Source of the DNA: Chlorokybus atmophyticus
Lineage: Eukaryota > Plantae > Mesostigma and Chlorokybus algae
Length of the DNA stretch: 64,000 bases
Reading direction: 5' to 3'
Assembly: GCA_009103225.1 (NCBI GenBank)
Contig: RHPI01000560.1
Coordinates: forward strand, 169,465 to 233,464
Both the position numbers and the translations under genes were made by a program. The notes beneath the pieces were generated by a model that saw only the letters and a program-made list of their open reading frames with translations, was not told the origin of the DNA and did not search any database. Within the stretch, counting starts at the first letter, position 1, and each line of letters starts with the position of its first letter. Below are positions 1-7,100 of this stretch, piece by piece.

Positions 1-1780
1 AGACATGGGGCTGTGTATTGTGAAACACATGCAAGCTTGAGAAGTTACTTACAAGCTTTTCTTCACACAATTACACTCTGTGGTAACAACGACGCCGATG
101 GCCATGGCAAAGGTCTAATGTTAGATACCACATATCATATAAAATAAGGAAAGTAAGCACACATGAGGTCACATAAGAAGGTCACAGACGGTTACAAGGC
201 AATGATGTGACAAGGATGTTGCATAAGCACACAAGCTAGCCTCATCCCTTAGTTAGCAACATGTGCCATGCACATACAGTCATTGGCCTCATTAATTGCC
301 AAGAACCTCGCCTCACACAATTGCCCATTGCAAAAGCTGTAAAGCTGAACCAAAAGGCTGCTGCATGTGGGCATACAGAGCTGCTCACCACATGAGGTCT
401 CATGTGATGGCTCAAGCTGCGCTGATGCGGTCTCAAGGCGTATGAGCAGTGAGTACAACATGATTATGTCCACCTGTACATGTACATGGAATGCACGGTG
501 TCGCCGCACACCACAACAGCACACAAACTTCGTCTGTAACCATGACACCACAACATCACATTGGCAGCACCGGAACATCCCACCATCCACATTACGCTCG
601 CTGCACTTGCTCGCAATGCTCGCTTGGCCGCAGCCACCACTCATCCACGCACGCACGCAAATTCTTGCATACCAATCCCGCCTCTCACCAAGACTCCTGT
701 GCACTCACACCCGGACACACCTCGTCGCTCACCCGCGCATCCGCCATGACACAGCCACGTCGTCGCGTCCACATCGGTTGTCGATATTGCGGGTGGCACT
801 GGCGCACGGCATGGCCACCGCAGCTGTGCCGGGCTACCATCATGTGACGGGAGAGGTACATAGCCATTACTAACCCTCCTAATGGCCTGACCCCCTAAGG
901 GCTTCACCAGCATCGCTACCGCAAAGACGGCAGTGGTGGCTGCGCAGTTTCACAACAACACATCCTCATTATCACATTCCTAAGACAATGGTTTGATGAC
1001 TGTAAGTCAACATGCGCACGCACGCAACGCAACATGCACACGCACCCACACAGACCTCCATACAACCCTTGCCTTCCAACCTCCCGCTTACCCCCTCAAG
1101 GGCGTAGGCATAACACATGGCCTCGTTGTAGCAAACCTTTATCCCTTGTTGAGGTTTCCTTGTCCTGGTGTGCTAGCCTGTATGAGCAGAGGATGCGCCG
1201 AGAATGCAGTGCCTACTCAAGTCAACACAAGGCAAGTCCAACATGTTCTGTGACCCCGACCTCCTGGAGAGTGCGTTCTCTGTCGTACCTTGGGCAGTTT
1301 CAAGCAAACAAGTCGTGATACCCCACGCACAGCAACAAGTCGCTCTCTGCCGAGTGGCTGCATGCATGTCTGCAATGCCCAGGTAGGCCACTGGGGCTAC
1401 AATAAAAACTTCGCCACCTTCACCGCCAGAAGCTTGTTGCAGCCATCTCCACTGTAGTGCCACACTGAGAGCAGCTGTGATCTGACTGCAAGATGACGTT
1501 GCTGAAGACCATATTTTCTTCGTGTGAAGCCCTGGCCAACAGGTGAGATCGTCAGTAAAAGTCCGCCGAACCGAACACCTGAATGCAACCAGACTTACCT
1601 CACAAGGAGTTCAGCAAAGCTTGCAGTGACCAGTCTTGGTTCTCAAGTCACTGCAGAGCAGGCCTGCTTTTGGCGTACTGAGATTCCTCAGAGCATGAGA
1701 CTTTTTCCTAACACCGCTGCTTGTGGGAGTCCGACTGCTGTTGTGACCGGCATGTACCAGCTTCCAGAACCATATGCTGG

Positions 1781-3337
1781 CTACTCCTGTGTGTGCGACA
1801 CAGCAGAAGATGCCACATGCTCTGCCTCATGCATGTGTGCATCAACGCCTTCTGCAGGCATTGCCATCAGTGCACTTGAAACGTCTGCAGGCTTTCCGAG
1901 CTTGCGAGGTTTTGCAACTTTGCCCTTTTCTCGCCCTGACACATACGCACGCAAAGAATCAACTTTGCGGGCAAGAAAAAAGCAGTGCTTCAAGCGGGGC
2001 TCGGCGACTCACCAAGATAATCTGACCATGACAGCCAGCCAAGATGTTTGTATACTTTGTCGGGAGCGGCAGGGATGTCCAACGGCCGGTTGCCACTCCC
2101 TTTCCATCGCTTATACTCGCTTTGGCTCTTGAGGCCCAGAGTCCACACATACTCCCTGGCCTGCATGACAAAAGATTGAGCATGCATTAGCATCGAGCAG
2201 ATAGAACCAATCTTGGGCTCACAAGCGAGAACCTGCAAGAATGGCCTCAACGGCTGTGACTCCGGACGTCGCACTTGTGCAAGCTTGCCTTTCGCAATGC
2301 CTAAGAAATCCGGCCACGAGACCCTGCAGACCTTTCATCAGGCACATGACAACAAGCACACCGCCCTCTAAGTCGTCCTCAGCACAGATCACCGTACCAT
2401 CCTTTGTGCCGATAGATGTTGTAAGGGCTTGCCGGGACATCAACTGGGCGCATGCCTGACTTTGTCCATGCATGAAACTCTGCTTGTGACCTGTGATACA
2501 TTGAAGGTTCTGCAACATGAGCAGATATACACAGCATTGGAATACACACAAAAACTAGAGTAATGCAACCCACATACTACACCTGAAGCCAAGCGACCAC
2601 ATGTACGTGCGGCAGTCCTCAAAGGGCCGGAACTCCACGTCGCGCGGTTTCTGCGCGCAGCAGTAGCGGCTCTTGCCCTTGTCTGTACCCAACCAATCTC
2701 CCCACGATATCCACCCCGCGCCCTCGTACACCTGCCAACAAGCCCACGCAAGTCAGTCCCAGACTCTTTCACCCGCAATGGCATATTCAGGCACATGCAC
2801 GCAAGTGTACCTTCTCGGGGGCGCTGGGTATGTCAAGCGGTCTGTGGCCATCTTTGCTCCATTTGAGGAAATCCGTACGAGTCTTCAGCCCCGCCGCCCA
2901 CACGACATCTCGAGCAGCCTCAAACGGCCTGAAGCCAATGCGGGTTTTGGACACGCGCCGCCGATCTGCACCCTCACCTTCGCTCTCACCCTCTGTGTCT
3001 TCACCCTCGTGCTCGTGCTCAGTGTGCTGCTGCTCTGCATGCGGGGCCTCATTGCGCCCATTTGTCGTTGGACCTTCTGCATAAAGTCTTTCCATTACTG
3101 TACTGTGTTGGTCATAATCAAGAATATGTGGTGTAAGAGGAGGTGCTATACCTACCTACAATGACAAGGTGGAAGCTGCGGTGACACCCGCATGCTGCGC
3201 AACGTCGGGCGTCTGTGGTTGTGGCGATGTTGTTATTCCTCTCGTTGTCGTTCTCATCGGGATCAAACTCCTGGCAACCGTCACGGATGGGCACGCCGCT
3301 GGCGCTCGCATTGATCACGCGCTGGCATGCACCGTAC
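1781..3337 (-). CDS. Multi-exon gene: ZF-HD-type zinc-finger (dimerisation) domain fused to three phage-integrase-type (INT_rpt-like) repeats; 5' exons probably extend to ~3.6-3.9 kb
   Basis: Exon 3337-3156 reads YGACQRVINASASGVPIRDGCQEFD...RCAACGCHRSFH (ZF-HD/MIF signature Y..C...DGC.EF...CAACGCHRxFH). Later GT-AG exons join in frame into three repeats: RPFEAARDVVWAAGLKTRTDFLKWSKDGHRPLDIPSAPEKVYEGAGWISWGDWLG, RPFEDCRTYMWSLGFRSQAEFHAWTKSGMRPVDVPASPYNIYRHKGWVSWPDFLG and RPFLQAREYVWTLGLKSQSEYKRWKGSGNRPLDIPAAPDKVYKHLGWLSWSDYLG. Stop at 1781. Confidence 0.8.
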
Positions 3338-3945
3338 CTGCATGCACAACGGCAACAGGTTGGTAAGTAATTGCACAACACAGGACAAAAGGCGAGGAAG
3401 AACATGCTCCGCTCTAGGCTTTGCTTTCGACTCAATGTGCAGAAAAGATCATAGTTCATGCACTGCGCCATGCACGTTGCATCTGCAGGAACGCAGTCTA
3501 ATGCAGTGGTCGATGGTCAGGATACTGGACTGCACTGCTCAAACAGAATGTCACACACACCTCGTGGGGAATTTTGGCTGACAGCCATGAGATAGCGTGC
3601 TCGCACTGCGTGCCCTTGATGCGACCGGGTTATTGCAGAGACTGCAATACAAAGGTACAGAGACGACAACGACAACAAGGACACGGTGTACAAAGCAGAT
3701 AGCGACGACGCTGATGATGAGAGCAGTTGCGCTTTAACTGTTGCCATGCACCAAGTGTCATTTGCCAGGGCAAAATCCTACCGTTTGCGCTGTTGTGCTG
3801 GCTCCATCAGCAGAATTTTGTAATGAATGTGACGCTTTCCAGCTTTCAGCGTATTCCGGTCACCAACCCTGTCGCCATCGCTATCGCCGCCTCCTCCACT
3901 CCATGGCCACCGGCGTGCATTGCACACAGGCAAGGTTAGGCAAAA

Positions 3946-3963
3946 TTAGGGTTAGGGTTAGGG
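3946..3963 (+). promoter_or_regulatory. (TTAGGG)3 interstitial telomere-like / telo-box repeat in the divergent promoter region
   Basis: ttagggttagggttaggg, preceded by another ggttagg, lies between two divergently transcribed genes. Confidence 0.55.
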
Positions 3964-4141
3964 GGCCCGGGCACCCCAACATGTACGCTGTGAACAGGAG
4001 TGTGTCGGGCTACAACACACATGTTGGGTCACGTGACTGCAGGGAGCGCTGTGCGCAAGCCGCAGCGATCGCCACGGCGGCGGCGGCGGCGGCGATGGGC
4101 AGGAGGCGGATGTCATTGTAGACCCTATTACTATTGACAAG

Positions 4142-7100
4142 ATGGTCGATGGGTCTACTGGAAAGCGCTCGCAGCCTAATGGATGCGGCGGCGACGCTGC
4201 AGCCTTCCGGCTGCGGGCGGCGGCGCAGCAGGGCTTGCTGTCCTCCCTGGCCAAGTCTCAGTCCCAGGCCCTGAAAGGAGGAGGAGGCGGGATCCAAGCG
4301 AAGGCGAAAGAGCGGGACAAGACAGGTCCCAGGACAGGCACTGGGACGCGTGATCGGGTCCCGGATCAGGATCTGGGACCCAAGTCGCCAACCGGAATGA
4401 CGCTGCCGAGAATCCCCCCCCAAGTCCAACCCTTTGGGAAGTTCCCGGAGAAGGAAGTCCTTGGCATGGACGCCTTGGCCAACAAGGTGTGGATTGCATC
4501 TCAGCTTGTTGTAAACAGATCTATCTCTTTCAAAACCGTCTCACTATTTCAACCCAGGATCTACCTAAAAGTGAAGTTGTCCCGTATGCGGGGATGCTTG
4601 CGAGGCGAGAAGCACGCCACCAGGCTGCTTTGAACGCTTATGCTAGTCAGAGGGACCAGCTAGCGGCAGACGTACGGGAGCATGTGGCCCACCTGTGCGC
4701 CGACTTCAGGTGCATGCACACGCAGTAGCCCACACATTCATGCACGTCCACGCGCACGCACGCACATGCACGCACACAACGCGCACGAATACTTGACAGT
4801 ACACGTGATCATGCGCACATAAGCGTATCATGCTCAAACATAGGCGCAAGAAGCATCTACCCCACGCATGCACACGTATGTTGCAGGGCACGAATGGCCG
4901 AATGCGACGTGGACATCGCCAACGAGTTCGCCCTCATGGACGACAACGACCGCCTGATGGCCCTGGAGGCCGCGGGCGTCGACCGCATATGGGAAGAAGT
5001 CTCCCGCCTCGTAAGAGAGTCATGAACTTTTACCCCTGTTGTTTTCCTCCTGCCTGTACTAAATTCCTTTCTCAGGGTCCTGTTCGTATGGGTTGGATCG
5101 AGGACTTGTCCAGTGCGCTGTCTCACTCGGAGGATGCGAGGCGTGTTCGTGTGGAGGAGGCGTTGGGGATGTTAGCGGCGGCGTTGTTGGACGCAGCGCA
5201 CCTCACGAACAATGAAGTTGAGATGGTCGTGCTGGAACCGGAGGCACTCGCACTTAACTGCGCCGCACTCGATAACCGCACGCACCACGCTGAACTCGTC
5301 TGTCAACTCAAGCGATACGAAGCCATTGCGCAAGTAAGTGTGATGACTGTAACTTCAGGGCTGATGACCGTTTGCACACATACACACACGCGCGCACGCA
5401 CTCCTTGTGGGTTGCAGGTGGAGAGGAGGAAGAGATGGGAGGCTGGGCGGGAGCGCTGGCGCCAGATCGTGACGCAGTACCTCATCGAACAGTTCCACAA
5501 ACGCTTCGCCAACGAAGAGTTCGCCCAACCTCCGACCCGAGTAGCCCTCCTAGTCGACCTCCGCACCCAACAAGAACAAGTAAGTTTGTGACCCACCCAC
5601 CCACTCACCCACCAACCCACCCATAGGCACACGGACGCACTGCGCCCCCCCGNNNNNNNNNNNNNNNNNNNNNNNNNNNNNNNNNNNNNNNNNNNNNNNN
5701 NNNNNNNNNNNNNNNNNNNNNNNNNNNNNNNNNNNNNNNNNNNNNNNNNNNNNNNNNNNNNNNNNNNNNNNNNNNNNNNNNNNNNNNNNNNNNNNNNNNN
5801 NNNNNNNNNNNNNNNNNNNNNNNNNNNNNNNNNNNNNNNNNNNNNNNNNNNNNNNNNNNNNNNNNNNNNNNNNNNNNNNNNNNNNNNNNNNNNNNNNNNN
5901 NNNNNNNNNNNNNNNNNNNNNNNNNNNNNNNNNNNNNNNNNNNNNNNNNNNNNNNNNNNNNNNNNNNNNNNNNNNNNNNNNNNNNNNNNNNNNNNNNNNN
6001 NNNNNNNNNNNNNNNNNNNNNNNNNNNNNNNNNNNNNNNNNNNNCTCGCTCCCCCACCCACTCTTTCACCCTCCCCCTCACAGGCCCACTCATCTCTATG
6101 CTCCCACCTCTCCTCCGCCTGCACCCTCTTCCCGCCCTCCAAGTCTTCCCCCTCCTCGGCCTCGTCCGCGGCGGCGGCGTGGGTGGCGGCGGCTGCGACG
6201 GCGAGCGAGACGTGGGAGGGAAGGATGGGGAGAGGGATGGCACGATTGCGGGAGGATGAGGAGGCGGTTGAGCAACATGCGCAAGAGGTGAGAGAAAGGG
6301 GGTGGGGGGCGAGAGGGGGAGGGGGGAACACTGAGTGTGGGTTGTTGGGCAGGTGTATATGCAGTTGCGGGCTGATGTGGCGCGGTATACTGATACTTTG
6401 TCGGGGAGTGATGTGGCGGCGATTGTTAGCCCGACGACGACGGTGACGCCCGTGAGCCCAATGTCACCCACACCACCACCTGTAGCGTCACCGACTCCAA
6501 CTGCGTCACGCGTCGAGGCGGCCAACAACAACGTCTCCGACGACAAAGGCAACAACAACCCAACGCAACCTGCGGACCCGTTGGAGACCGCGTGCGCTCC
6601 CGTGCTCGCATCCCGCCGTGAGGCCGCAGCCACACTACTGGCACAAACCCACACTTTCCTCGTGCGCGACCTCGCTCGCTCACGTACTGTAGCCAACACT
6701 CTCCACGCCTTCCTTGCGAGTGTGTGTAATGCACACGATGAACATGTTGGGCGGGTGGAAGGTGTCATGAGTACAACAAGAGATGGGATGGCCGAGGCGC
6801 GGGCACGCCTTGAAGCACGCGAGAAAGCAATGGAGGAGGACTTTACGTTGGCGTGTGGTAAGCTTGCGCGCGGATGGAGCGAGAAGGTCATTGACCAACA
6901 CGCGGGTGAAGCTCTTGCGTTGTTACGCCAACTTGAAGTTGAGTACCGAGCCTTTCACGTCGAGTCCATTGCGTTGGCAGAGAGGCACCCGGGTCAACTT
7001 GCGGCTGAAGCTGCCACGCACGAGAGCGAGTTGTGTACTTTGCTCCTGCTCAACCCAGCCACGTCCGTCGGGTCACCCCAACCCAATAACAATGATGTTG

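Follow-up and report, generated by a model that had tools for sequence, protein, structure and literature searches.

A Chlorokybus gene combining a ZF-HD-type zinc finger with predicted INT_rpt repeats

In a 64,000-nucleotide stretch of the Chlorokybus atmophyticus genome (contig RHPI01000560.1, positions 169,465 to 233,464 of the forward strand; hereafter the window, whose numbering we use throughout), we describe a minus-strand gene that joins a ZF-HD_dimer zinc finger to an array of three repeats, which we assign to the INT_rpt family (Pfam: PF14882) on the basis of their sequence and predicted fold. In the encoded protein, 8 N-terminal residues precede the finger, which a ~40-residue linker, acidic and rich in His, connects to the three INT_rpt domains; a basic tail closes the chain. 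An earlier note, made from the letters of this DNA, had proposed a finger, an acidic linker, and three repeats in one spliced frame, and this layout is borne out by contig junctions, a match to Pfam PF04770, and internal repeats. The novelty lies in a new combination of two known domains. We consider the descriptive part of this account (i.e., an expressed nuclear green-algal gene with the gene model and domains given below, and with no homeodomain) very probably correct, and we give a probability of roughly 0.55 to the whole explanation, in which the described protein would be a modular nuclear regulator with a nucleic-acid-contacting repeat array.

Gene model, transcript evidence, and zinc finger

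The open frame comprises 1,107 nt (369 codons) in eight exons and runs on the minus strand from an ATG at 3807 to a stop codon at 1783-1781. All seven introns of the coding sequence (CDS), 72-444 nt in length, begin with GT and end with AG, their phases are compatible, and the split codons all close. Transcript data were taken from four public runs of one organism and aligned to positions 900-5600. One contig (run X1, record 2, 1,633 nt) spans 3904 to 1288 and includes every CDS junction; a contig from a second study (run X2), identical to the window, carries the junctions 1935|2013 and 2160|2233, and a contig of run X3 carries 2490|2583. Ten intron-sized gaps have CT..AC ends in the plus-strand reading, so that only spliced RNA can be their source. 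The single spliced frame that the earlier note had drawn from the finger exon (3337-3156) into the repeat exons is present, and the junction, 3156|3076, is carried by the X1 contig; the next exon begins at 3076, not at 3073 as had been proposed. A contig row reading 3078|3161 with an ATG between corresponds to this 3076|3156 junction together with two strain differences (att>atc, synonymous; gta>ata, Val>Ile).

The coding sequence had been taken to begin at 3337, which overlooked a first mini-exon, E0 (3782..3904, minus strand, as are all exons below), with the start codon on the far side of a 444-nt intron. E0 contains the 5' leader and ATG 3807-3805, encodes MEPAQQRK plus two bases of an Arg codon, and is supported by the 3337|3782 joint in the spliced contig and by the GT..AG ends of intron 3781..3338. 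ATG 3807 is the earliest in-frame ATG downstream of in-frame stops; position 3904 is the end of the contig, and the true 5' end of E0 may be further upstream. We rejected an alternative start at ATG 3471 and an alternative first exon at 3747..3561, which misfit in phase and in place of which the contig has the 3337|3782 joint.

The second exon, E1 (3156..3337), contributes 60 whole codons (YGAC...CAACGCHRSFHLVIV) and encodes the zinc finger. Its translation, YGACQRVINASASGVPIRDGCQEF...CAACGCHRSFH, matches PF04770 over profile positions 4-50 of 55 with 43.4 bits against a cut-off of 27 (E 4.2e-11); this is 16 bits over the gathering cut-off and upholds the ZF-HD/MIF-type finger of the earlier note. 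Searched alone, E1 also matches TIGR01566 with 37.7 bits (E 2e-9), which is significant yet under the curated cut-off of 51.1. The Atlas clusters nearest to E1 in a language-model search, which serves as a lead only, are all streptophyte ZF-HD_dimer clusters (0.84-0.86). The signature of the ZF-HD_dimer domain consists of five Cys and three His residues (Ia-1 C; Ia-2 H, C; Ib C, C, C, H, H; PMC10415114), and seven of these eight are found in E1 (C4, C21, C46, C49, C51, H52, and H56), the Cys being complete and the His one short. Ile8 stands where the Ia-2 His is expected, as read against the consensus Y.EC.KNHAA rather than a printed alignment. A sequence search of the PDB with the finger gave no match, and a word-index protein search with the finger and with E6, an exon carrying most of one repeat, gave no candidate within 0.55-1.75x the query length, longer relatives being outside its reach.

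Between the window and the strain of run X1, E1 differs at seven sites, four of them synonymous and three conservative, and none lies in a motif, a pattern that fits purifying selection. Divergence along the gene is uneven, the finger exon and 5' leader differing by ~4-6% and the repeat exons and 3' untranslated region (UTR) by <=1%. As to distribution, ZF-dimer domains outside land plants have already been catalogued, including 31 green-algal genes (PMC10415114). Furthermore, HD-PLINC has been placed at the base of the streptophytes, and HD-PLINC genes are reported in the Mesostigma/Chlorokybus clade (PMC7027972).

These data bear on the possibility that the gene is an artefact, i.e., two adjacent genes or a decaying pseudogene read as one open reading frame (ORF), with the finger matched by chance in a Cys-rich stretch. 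In favour of an artefact, the RNA nature of the runs is a guess, the data are in contig form, and a contig that crosses two genes is no proof of a single transcript; one signature His is missing, and the NCBIfam cut-off is not reached. On the other hand, ten GT-AG joints are in register with one 369-codon frame and all junctions occur in a single contig, the contigs of two independent studies concur, the Pfam score is well above its gathering cut-off, and the substitutions between strains are conservative. We regard this explanation as already largely refuted and as very improbable.

At the other end of the gene, the stop codon falls inside E7, an exon supported by contigs. The coding part of E7 (1781..1935; joint 1935|2013 in X1 and X2) encodes a basic stretch (REKGKVAKPRKLGKP), which from its composition is a possible nuclear localisation signal, followed by a His-rich tail; E7 has no Pfam match. 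Beyond the stop codon the exon continues as 3' UTR down to 1598, and the 3' UTR as a whole (1288..1780), in the same X1 contig, contains a GT-AG intron at 1597..1531. Pfam scans found no homeodomain in any exon, including the C-terminal one, or in the ORFs of the 3' UTR region, in agreement with the earlier note, which had seen no homeodomain in the encoded protein. Likewise, scans with Pfam, NCBIfam, and PHROGs found no enzymatic domain in any exon.

The repeat array and its relatives

The repeats extend over exons E2 to E6. E2 (2811..3076; joints in the contig) encodes the acidic, His-rich linker, with 12 D+E against 4 K+R over its first 40 residues, and then the initial 44 residues of repeat 1 (RIGFRPFEAARDVVWAAGLKTRTDFLKWSKDGHRPLDIPSAPEK). 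E3 (2583..2731; joints in the contig) completes repeat 1 (VYEGAGWISWGDWLGT) and, after a basic linker, opens repeat 2 (VEFRPFEDCRTYMWSLGF), and E4 (2398..2490; joints in the contig and also in run X3) holds the middle of repeat 2 (SQAEFHAWTKSGMRPVDVPASPYNIYRHKG) followed by a split Trp codon. The end of repeat 2 (VSWPDFLG), a further basic linker (IAKGKLAQVRR...), and the start of repeat 3 (LRPFLQ) are encoded by E5 (2233..2323; joints in runs X1 and X2), and nearly the whole of repeat 3 (AREYVWTLGLKSQSEYKRWKGSGNRPLDIPAAPDKVYKHLGWLSWSDYL) by E6 (2013..2160). The exons that encode repeats and linkers have a net basic composition, and a basic G-x-x-KGK motif recurs in the linkers between repeats.

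The three W-rich repeats had been described as units of ~55 aa; the repeats are genuine and number three, with a period of ~74 aa made up of a domain of ~57 aa and a basic linker of ~16 aa. Aligned with one another, E6 and the tail of E2 are 51% identical over 37 aa (E 1.5e-11) and E6 and E4 are 50% identical over 32 aa (E 9e-10), and we found no additional repeat copies in the window. E6 is nearer to repeats of other proteins (61-65% identity) than to its own sibling repeats (~50%), and the intron positions differ from repeat to repeat, suggesting that the array is old and was inherited as an array rather than produced by recent internal duplication.

Exon pieces were searched and folded separately. 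A scan with the PF14882 model, the check suggested in the earlier note, gave no match on any piece, each scanned singly, even at E 10, and NCBIfam and PHROGs scans of the repeat-bearing pieces found nothing for the repeats. When the window's five repeat pieces were combined into a profile, it retrieved, out of 1.84 billion proteins, 5,726 cluster representatives at E<=1e-3 and 1,017 at E<=1e-30, and PF14882 INT_rpt is present in 42 of the 68 best profile matches. In the reciprocal direction, a hidden Markov model (HMM) made from 892 repeats of other proteins scored E6 at 72.0 bits, the tail of E2 (residues 45-88) at 49.9, E4 at 34.4, and the two ends of E3 at 16.7 and 15.3, each piece aligning in register with the expected part of the domain. 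The profile, the reciprocal HMM, and the predicted fold agree with the kinship to the Pfam "phage-integrase repeat unit" (formerly PHINT_rpt, now INT_rpt, "integrase repeat unit") that the earlier note had noticed, and on this evidence of sequence and modelling all three repeats are assigned to the INT_rpt family.

The PF14882 model itself has low sensitivity: it gives a protein with 17 repeats no more than 62 bits and passes none of its stretches individually, and two other Chlorokybus proteins, with seven and five repeats (Chlat1/7245 and Chlat1/9215, here P0033 and P0104), have no match. Most algal INT_rpt proteins will thus escape architecture surveys that rely on Pfam. A sequence search of the PDB with E6 gave no match, and a scan of viral contigs with E6 gave no confirmed locus.

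The structural predictions are consistent with the assignment. The AlphaFold2 model of E6 (83 sequences) has four short helices and a predicted local distance difference test score (pLDDT) of 90, and that of a three-repeat stretch of P0033 (81 aligned sequences) has a pLDDT of 89.7 and a predicted template modelling score (pTM) of 0.44; high pLDDT combined with low pTM points to well-folded beads on flexible linkers. Each INT_rpt is thus modelled as an independent mini-domain of ~57 residues, rich in aromatics and folded into four short helices. Compared with INT_rpt-bearing Atlas clusters, the E6 model gives TM scores of 0.84-0.91 and root-mean-square deviations of 0.7-1.1 over 48-49 residues, with predictions on both sides. 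The Atlas matches to the E6 fold include small phage proteins, Helicase_C/INT_rpt proteins, IS66 transposases, phage LAGLIDADG endonucleases, and DUF559/INT_rpt nucleases, and matches among viral models include superfamily 2 (SF2) helicases of giant viruses (Klosneuvirus, Bodo saltans virus, Marseillevirus, and others). Foldseek found no analogue in the PDB for the three-repeat or the single-repeat model, and the best Z in a VIA-align comparison with 48,161 chains was only 2.7 (RepB).

The family consists mostly of bacterial or metagenomic helicases and nucleases, giant-virus helicases, and green-algal proteins; only 1 of 50,697 phage records matches E6 by sequence, contrary to the earlier description of the repeat as found mainly in phage. 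Domains co-occurring with the repeat in the sampled matches are Helicase_C, ResIII, DEAD, SNF2, Mrr_cat_2, and a methyltransferase, and among the best 120 relatives of P0033, Helicase_C is present in 30 and Mrr_cat_2 in 7. The partners of INT_rpt are, in sum, overwhelmingly enzymes acting on DNA.

The closest single repeats, 61-65% identical to E6 over its full length, occur in P0033 and P0104, in "methyltransferase domain-containing" proteins of Pycnococcus provasolii and Pseudoscourfieldia marina, and in metagenomic proteins on eukaryote-like contigs; P0033 and P0104 also have the signature AREYVWTL..KS...Y..W of the window's repeats. Two metagenomic loci, L001 (ENA ERZ25878734 ctg17058l) and L002 (ENA ERZ25071366 ctg5079l), have a GC content of 56-58%, fragmented gene calls, and 5- and 7-repeat INT_rpt proteins 61% identical to E6, and L001 also bears a leucine-rich repeat gene. 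Both loci are probably from uncultured green algae.

The company of INT_rpt suggests a different history, in which the protein would be a domesticated piece of a mobile element or defence system serving DNA repair, genome defence, or chromatin marking, its array targeting a DNA feature and its finger acting as a zinc-binding module for oligomerisation or recruitment. Such an origin would fit the occurrence of INT_rpt arrays on Mrr_cat_2 and DUF559/Vsr-like nucleases, IS66 transposases, homing endonucleases, SF2 helicases, and algal methyltransferases. It fits less well with the lack of an enzymatic domain in every exon and with the order of finger, acidic linker, binding array, and basic tail, which is regulator-like, and we consider it improbable.

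We further asked how special the combination of finger and repeats is. In none of the 258 INT_rpt family proteins retrieved did a regular-expression search find a CxxCxCHxxxH motif or phmmer any similarity to the finger, and no finger was found near the repeats at L001 and L002, the metagenomic loci with the closest repeats (six-frame regular-expression search and tblastn). The lists of relatives are ranked by summed score and favour many-repeat proteins, three-repeat ones ranking below those listed, and the window's own protein does not appear in them, so that absence of the combination elsewhere is suggested rather than established. Of the lineage-specific chimera put forward in the earlier note, the chimera is real and the retrieved relatives fit a lineage-restricted fusion, while the restriction itself has the strength that these lists allow. 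Full-text literature searches returned no paper connecting Chlorokybus with ZF-HD and almost nothing on PF14882.

Candidate roles of the protein

In the explanation that we favour, a modular nuclear regulator, the finger would mediate zinc-dependent homo- or heterodimerisation with other ZF-HD-finger proteins, as in land-plant ZHD and MIF proteins. ZF-dimer dimerisation and MIF-ZHD interplay are established in land plants (PMC10415114 and PMC5948964, as cited there). The basic INT_rpt beads and their basic linkers would stand in for the homeodomain as the nucleic-acid-contacting part, a role that INT_rpt arrays also appear to have where they are attached to SF2 helicases, Mrr/Vsr-type nucleases, IS66 transposases, homing endonucleases, or methyltransferases, and the acidic linker could be an activation or partner-binding segment. 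The protein would have originated when the finger exon was joined, within the Chlorokybus lineage, to a repeat array that was already old. We infer contact between the array and nucleic acid from the DNA-acting enzymes that are its partners elsewhere and from the basic repeat and linker exons, and by this analogy DNA binding is a reasonable expectation. The mechanistic part of the explanation (DNA-contacting array, dimerising finger, regulator) we put forward tentatively, at somewhat less than even odds.

Several points weigh against this explanation. INT_rpt has no solved analogue, so that DNA binding would be assigned through guilt by association, and beads so rich in aromatic residues might just as well have RNA, protein, or another ligand as their target. 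Nuclear localisation is a guess from the basic stretch in E7. The finger is under the trusted cut-off of NCBIfam TIGR01566, the Ile in place of one signature His may alter one zinc site, and Pfam's own INT_rpt model misses the exon pieces. The runs are labelled "RNA?", which is a guess, and are available as contigs only, and therefore give no expression level or transcript ends. In addition, the 5' leader contains two short upstream ORFs before the start codon, at ATG 3904 (MEWRRRR, then stop) and ATG 3878 (10 codons), both out of frame with ATG 3807. The earlier proposal of a chimeric transcription factor in which the repeat supplies the DNA-binding module stands as far as the chimera is concerned, which is transcribed; for DNA binding and a transcription-factor role the argument is the company that the domain keeps.

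The dimerising finger also allows for a MIF-like adaptor, docking through the finger on the alga's own ZF-HD (HD-PLINC) proteins while the beads bind protein or RNA, so that ZHDs would be modulated or sequestered with no DNA contact by the adaptor itself. The finger-only MIF proteins of land plants do act via heterodimers with ZHDs (PMC10415114), potential partners exist in the HD-PLINC genes reported in the Mesostigma/Chlorokybus clade (PMC7027972), and the predicted INT_rpt fold is unlike any solved DNA-binding fold in the Foldseek and VIA-align comparisons. However, the region of repeats and linkers is net basic, and the partners of INT_rpt elsewhere are nearly all DNA-acting enzymes, favouring nucleic acid over protein as the ligand. 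We consider an adaptor unlikely, if the less unlikely of the two alternative functions discussed here.

The significance of the gene lies in both halves of the protein. ZF-HD is treated as a plant-specific family of finger plus homeodomain, and how the two were joined is debated (PMC10415114). An expressed gene of the deepest streptophyte branch that joins the finger to a different, putatively nucleic-acid-binding array shows that the finger behaved as a portable module, and a finger without a homeodomain here indicates that it had more than one partner early in the plant lineage. INT_rpt is a large family, its members in bacteria, giant viruses, and algae forming at least 5,726 clusters at 50% identity. 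We know of no solved structure and no function for it, and, being small and made up of a putative dimeriser and three repeats with no enzyme, the Chlorokybus protein lends itself to finding out what INT_rpt binds. We regard the gene as moderately interesting, both for the question of how ZF-HD factors arose and as a way to study a widespread domain.

A bolder extension, which we think decidedly unlikely and offer as speculation, is that INT_rpt constitutes an unrecognised modular, possibly sequence-reading class of DNA-binding domains, and that the ZF-HD finger was a free dimerisation cassette in the earliest streptophytes, paired with INT_rpt in Chlorokybus and with the homeodomain toward land plants. 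If this were true, the Chlorokybus genes would be surviving evidence of the assembly of the plant-specific ZF-HD family and a eukaryotic entry point to a domain found in thousands of helicases and nucleases.

Neighbourhood and comparison with known systems

Upstream of the gene, a (TTAGGG)3 telomere-type repeat occupies 3946-3963, with ~40 nt between it and the 5' end of the transcript contig, within a short divergent promoter region common to the gene and a plus-strand ORF starting at 4142; from its sequence and position it may be a telo-box-like promoter element. A further neighbouring ORF (4830-5591, plus strand) matches Pfam DUF4455 with 59.9 bits against a cut-off of 30.4, and its gene runs into an assembly gap (N run 5653-6044). 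Downstream, other contigs on the minus strand over 900-1780 contain further GT-AG joints (1287..1164 and 1091..940), which belong either to a 3' UTR that is long and has several introns or to a non-coding transcript of its own; the ORFs in 900-1780 on this strand have no Pfam match.

Like members of the land-plant ZF-HD family, the Chlorokybus protein has an N-terminal ZF-HD_dimer finger with the motifs C..., DGC.EF, and CAACGCHR.FH, and it comes from a streptophyte. As read against the consensus, its finger differs from that of land plants in having Ile at one signature His. ZHD proteins carry a homeodomain C-terminal to the finger, whereas the Chlorokybus protein has none, and MIF proteins have the finger as sole domain in ~100 aa, whereas the Chlorokybus protein has 369 codons and three further domains predicted to be folded. 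Furthermore, land-plant ZF-HD genes are mostly intronless, and the Chlorokybus gene has seven CDS introns.

The comparison with INT_rpt proteins shows the same mixture of likeness and difference. Common to both are the ~57-aa repeat F-R-x-F-E-x-A-R ... L-G-L-K-S ... R-P-x-D-I-P-x-x-P ... Y ... G-W-x-S-W-x-D-W/F-L-G and, in prediction, a four-helix mini-domain arranged as beads on a string. The tandem layout is three copies with a period of ~74 aa, against a commonest spacing of 63-68 aa in the family, and in helix 2 the Chlorokybus repeats have Y/F...W where the family has W...Y/W; the Chlorokybus repeats are too divergent for the Pfam model. Unlike other INT_rpt proteins, the protein has no enzymatic domain and carries a plant-type zinc finger in its stead. 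Its relative P0033 has seven INT_rpt repeats to its three, in a public model that begins mid-repeat; the two Chlorokybus proteins have in common the lineage signature AREYVWTL...Y..W, and one P0033 repeat is 63% identical to E6.

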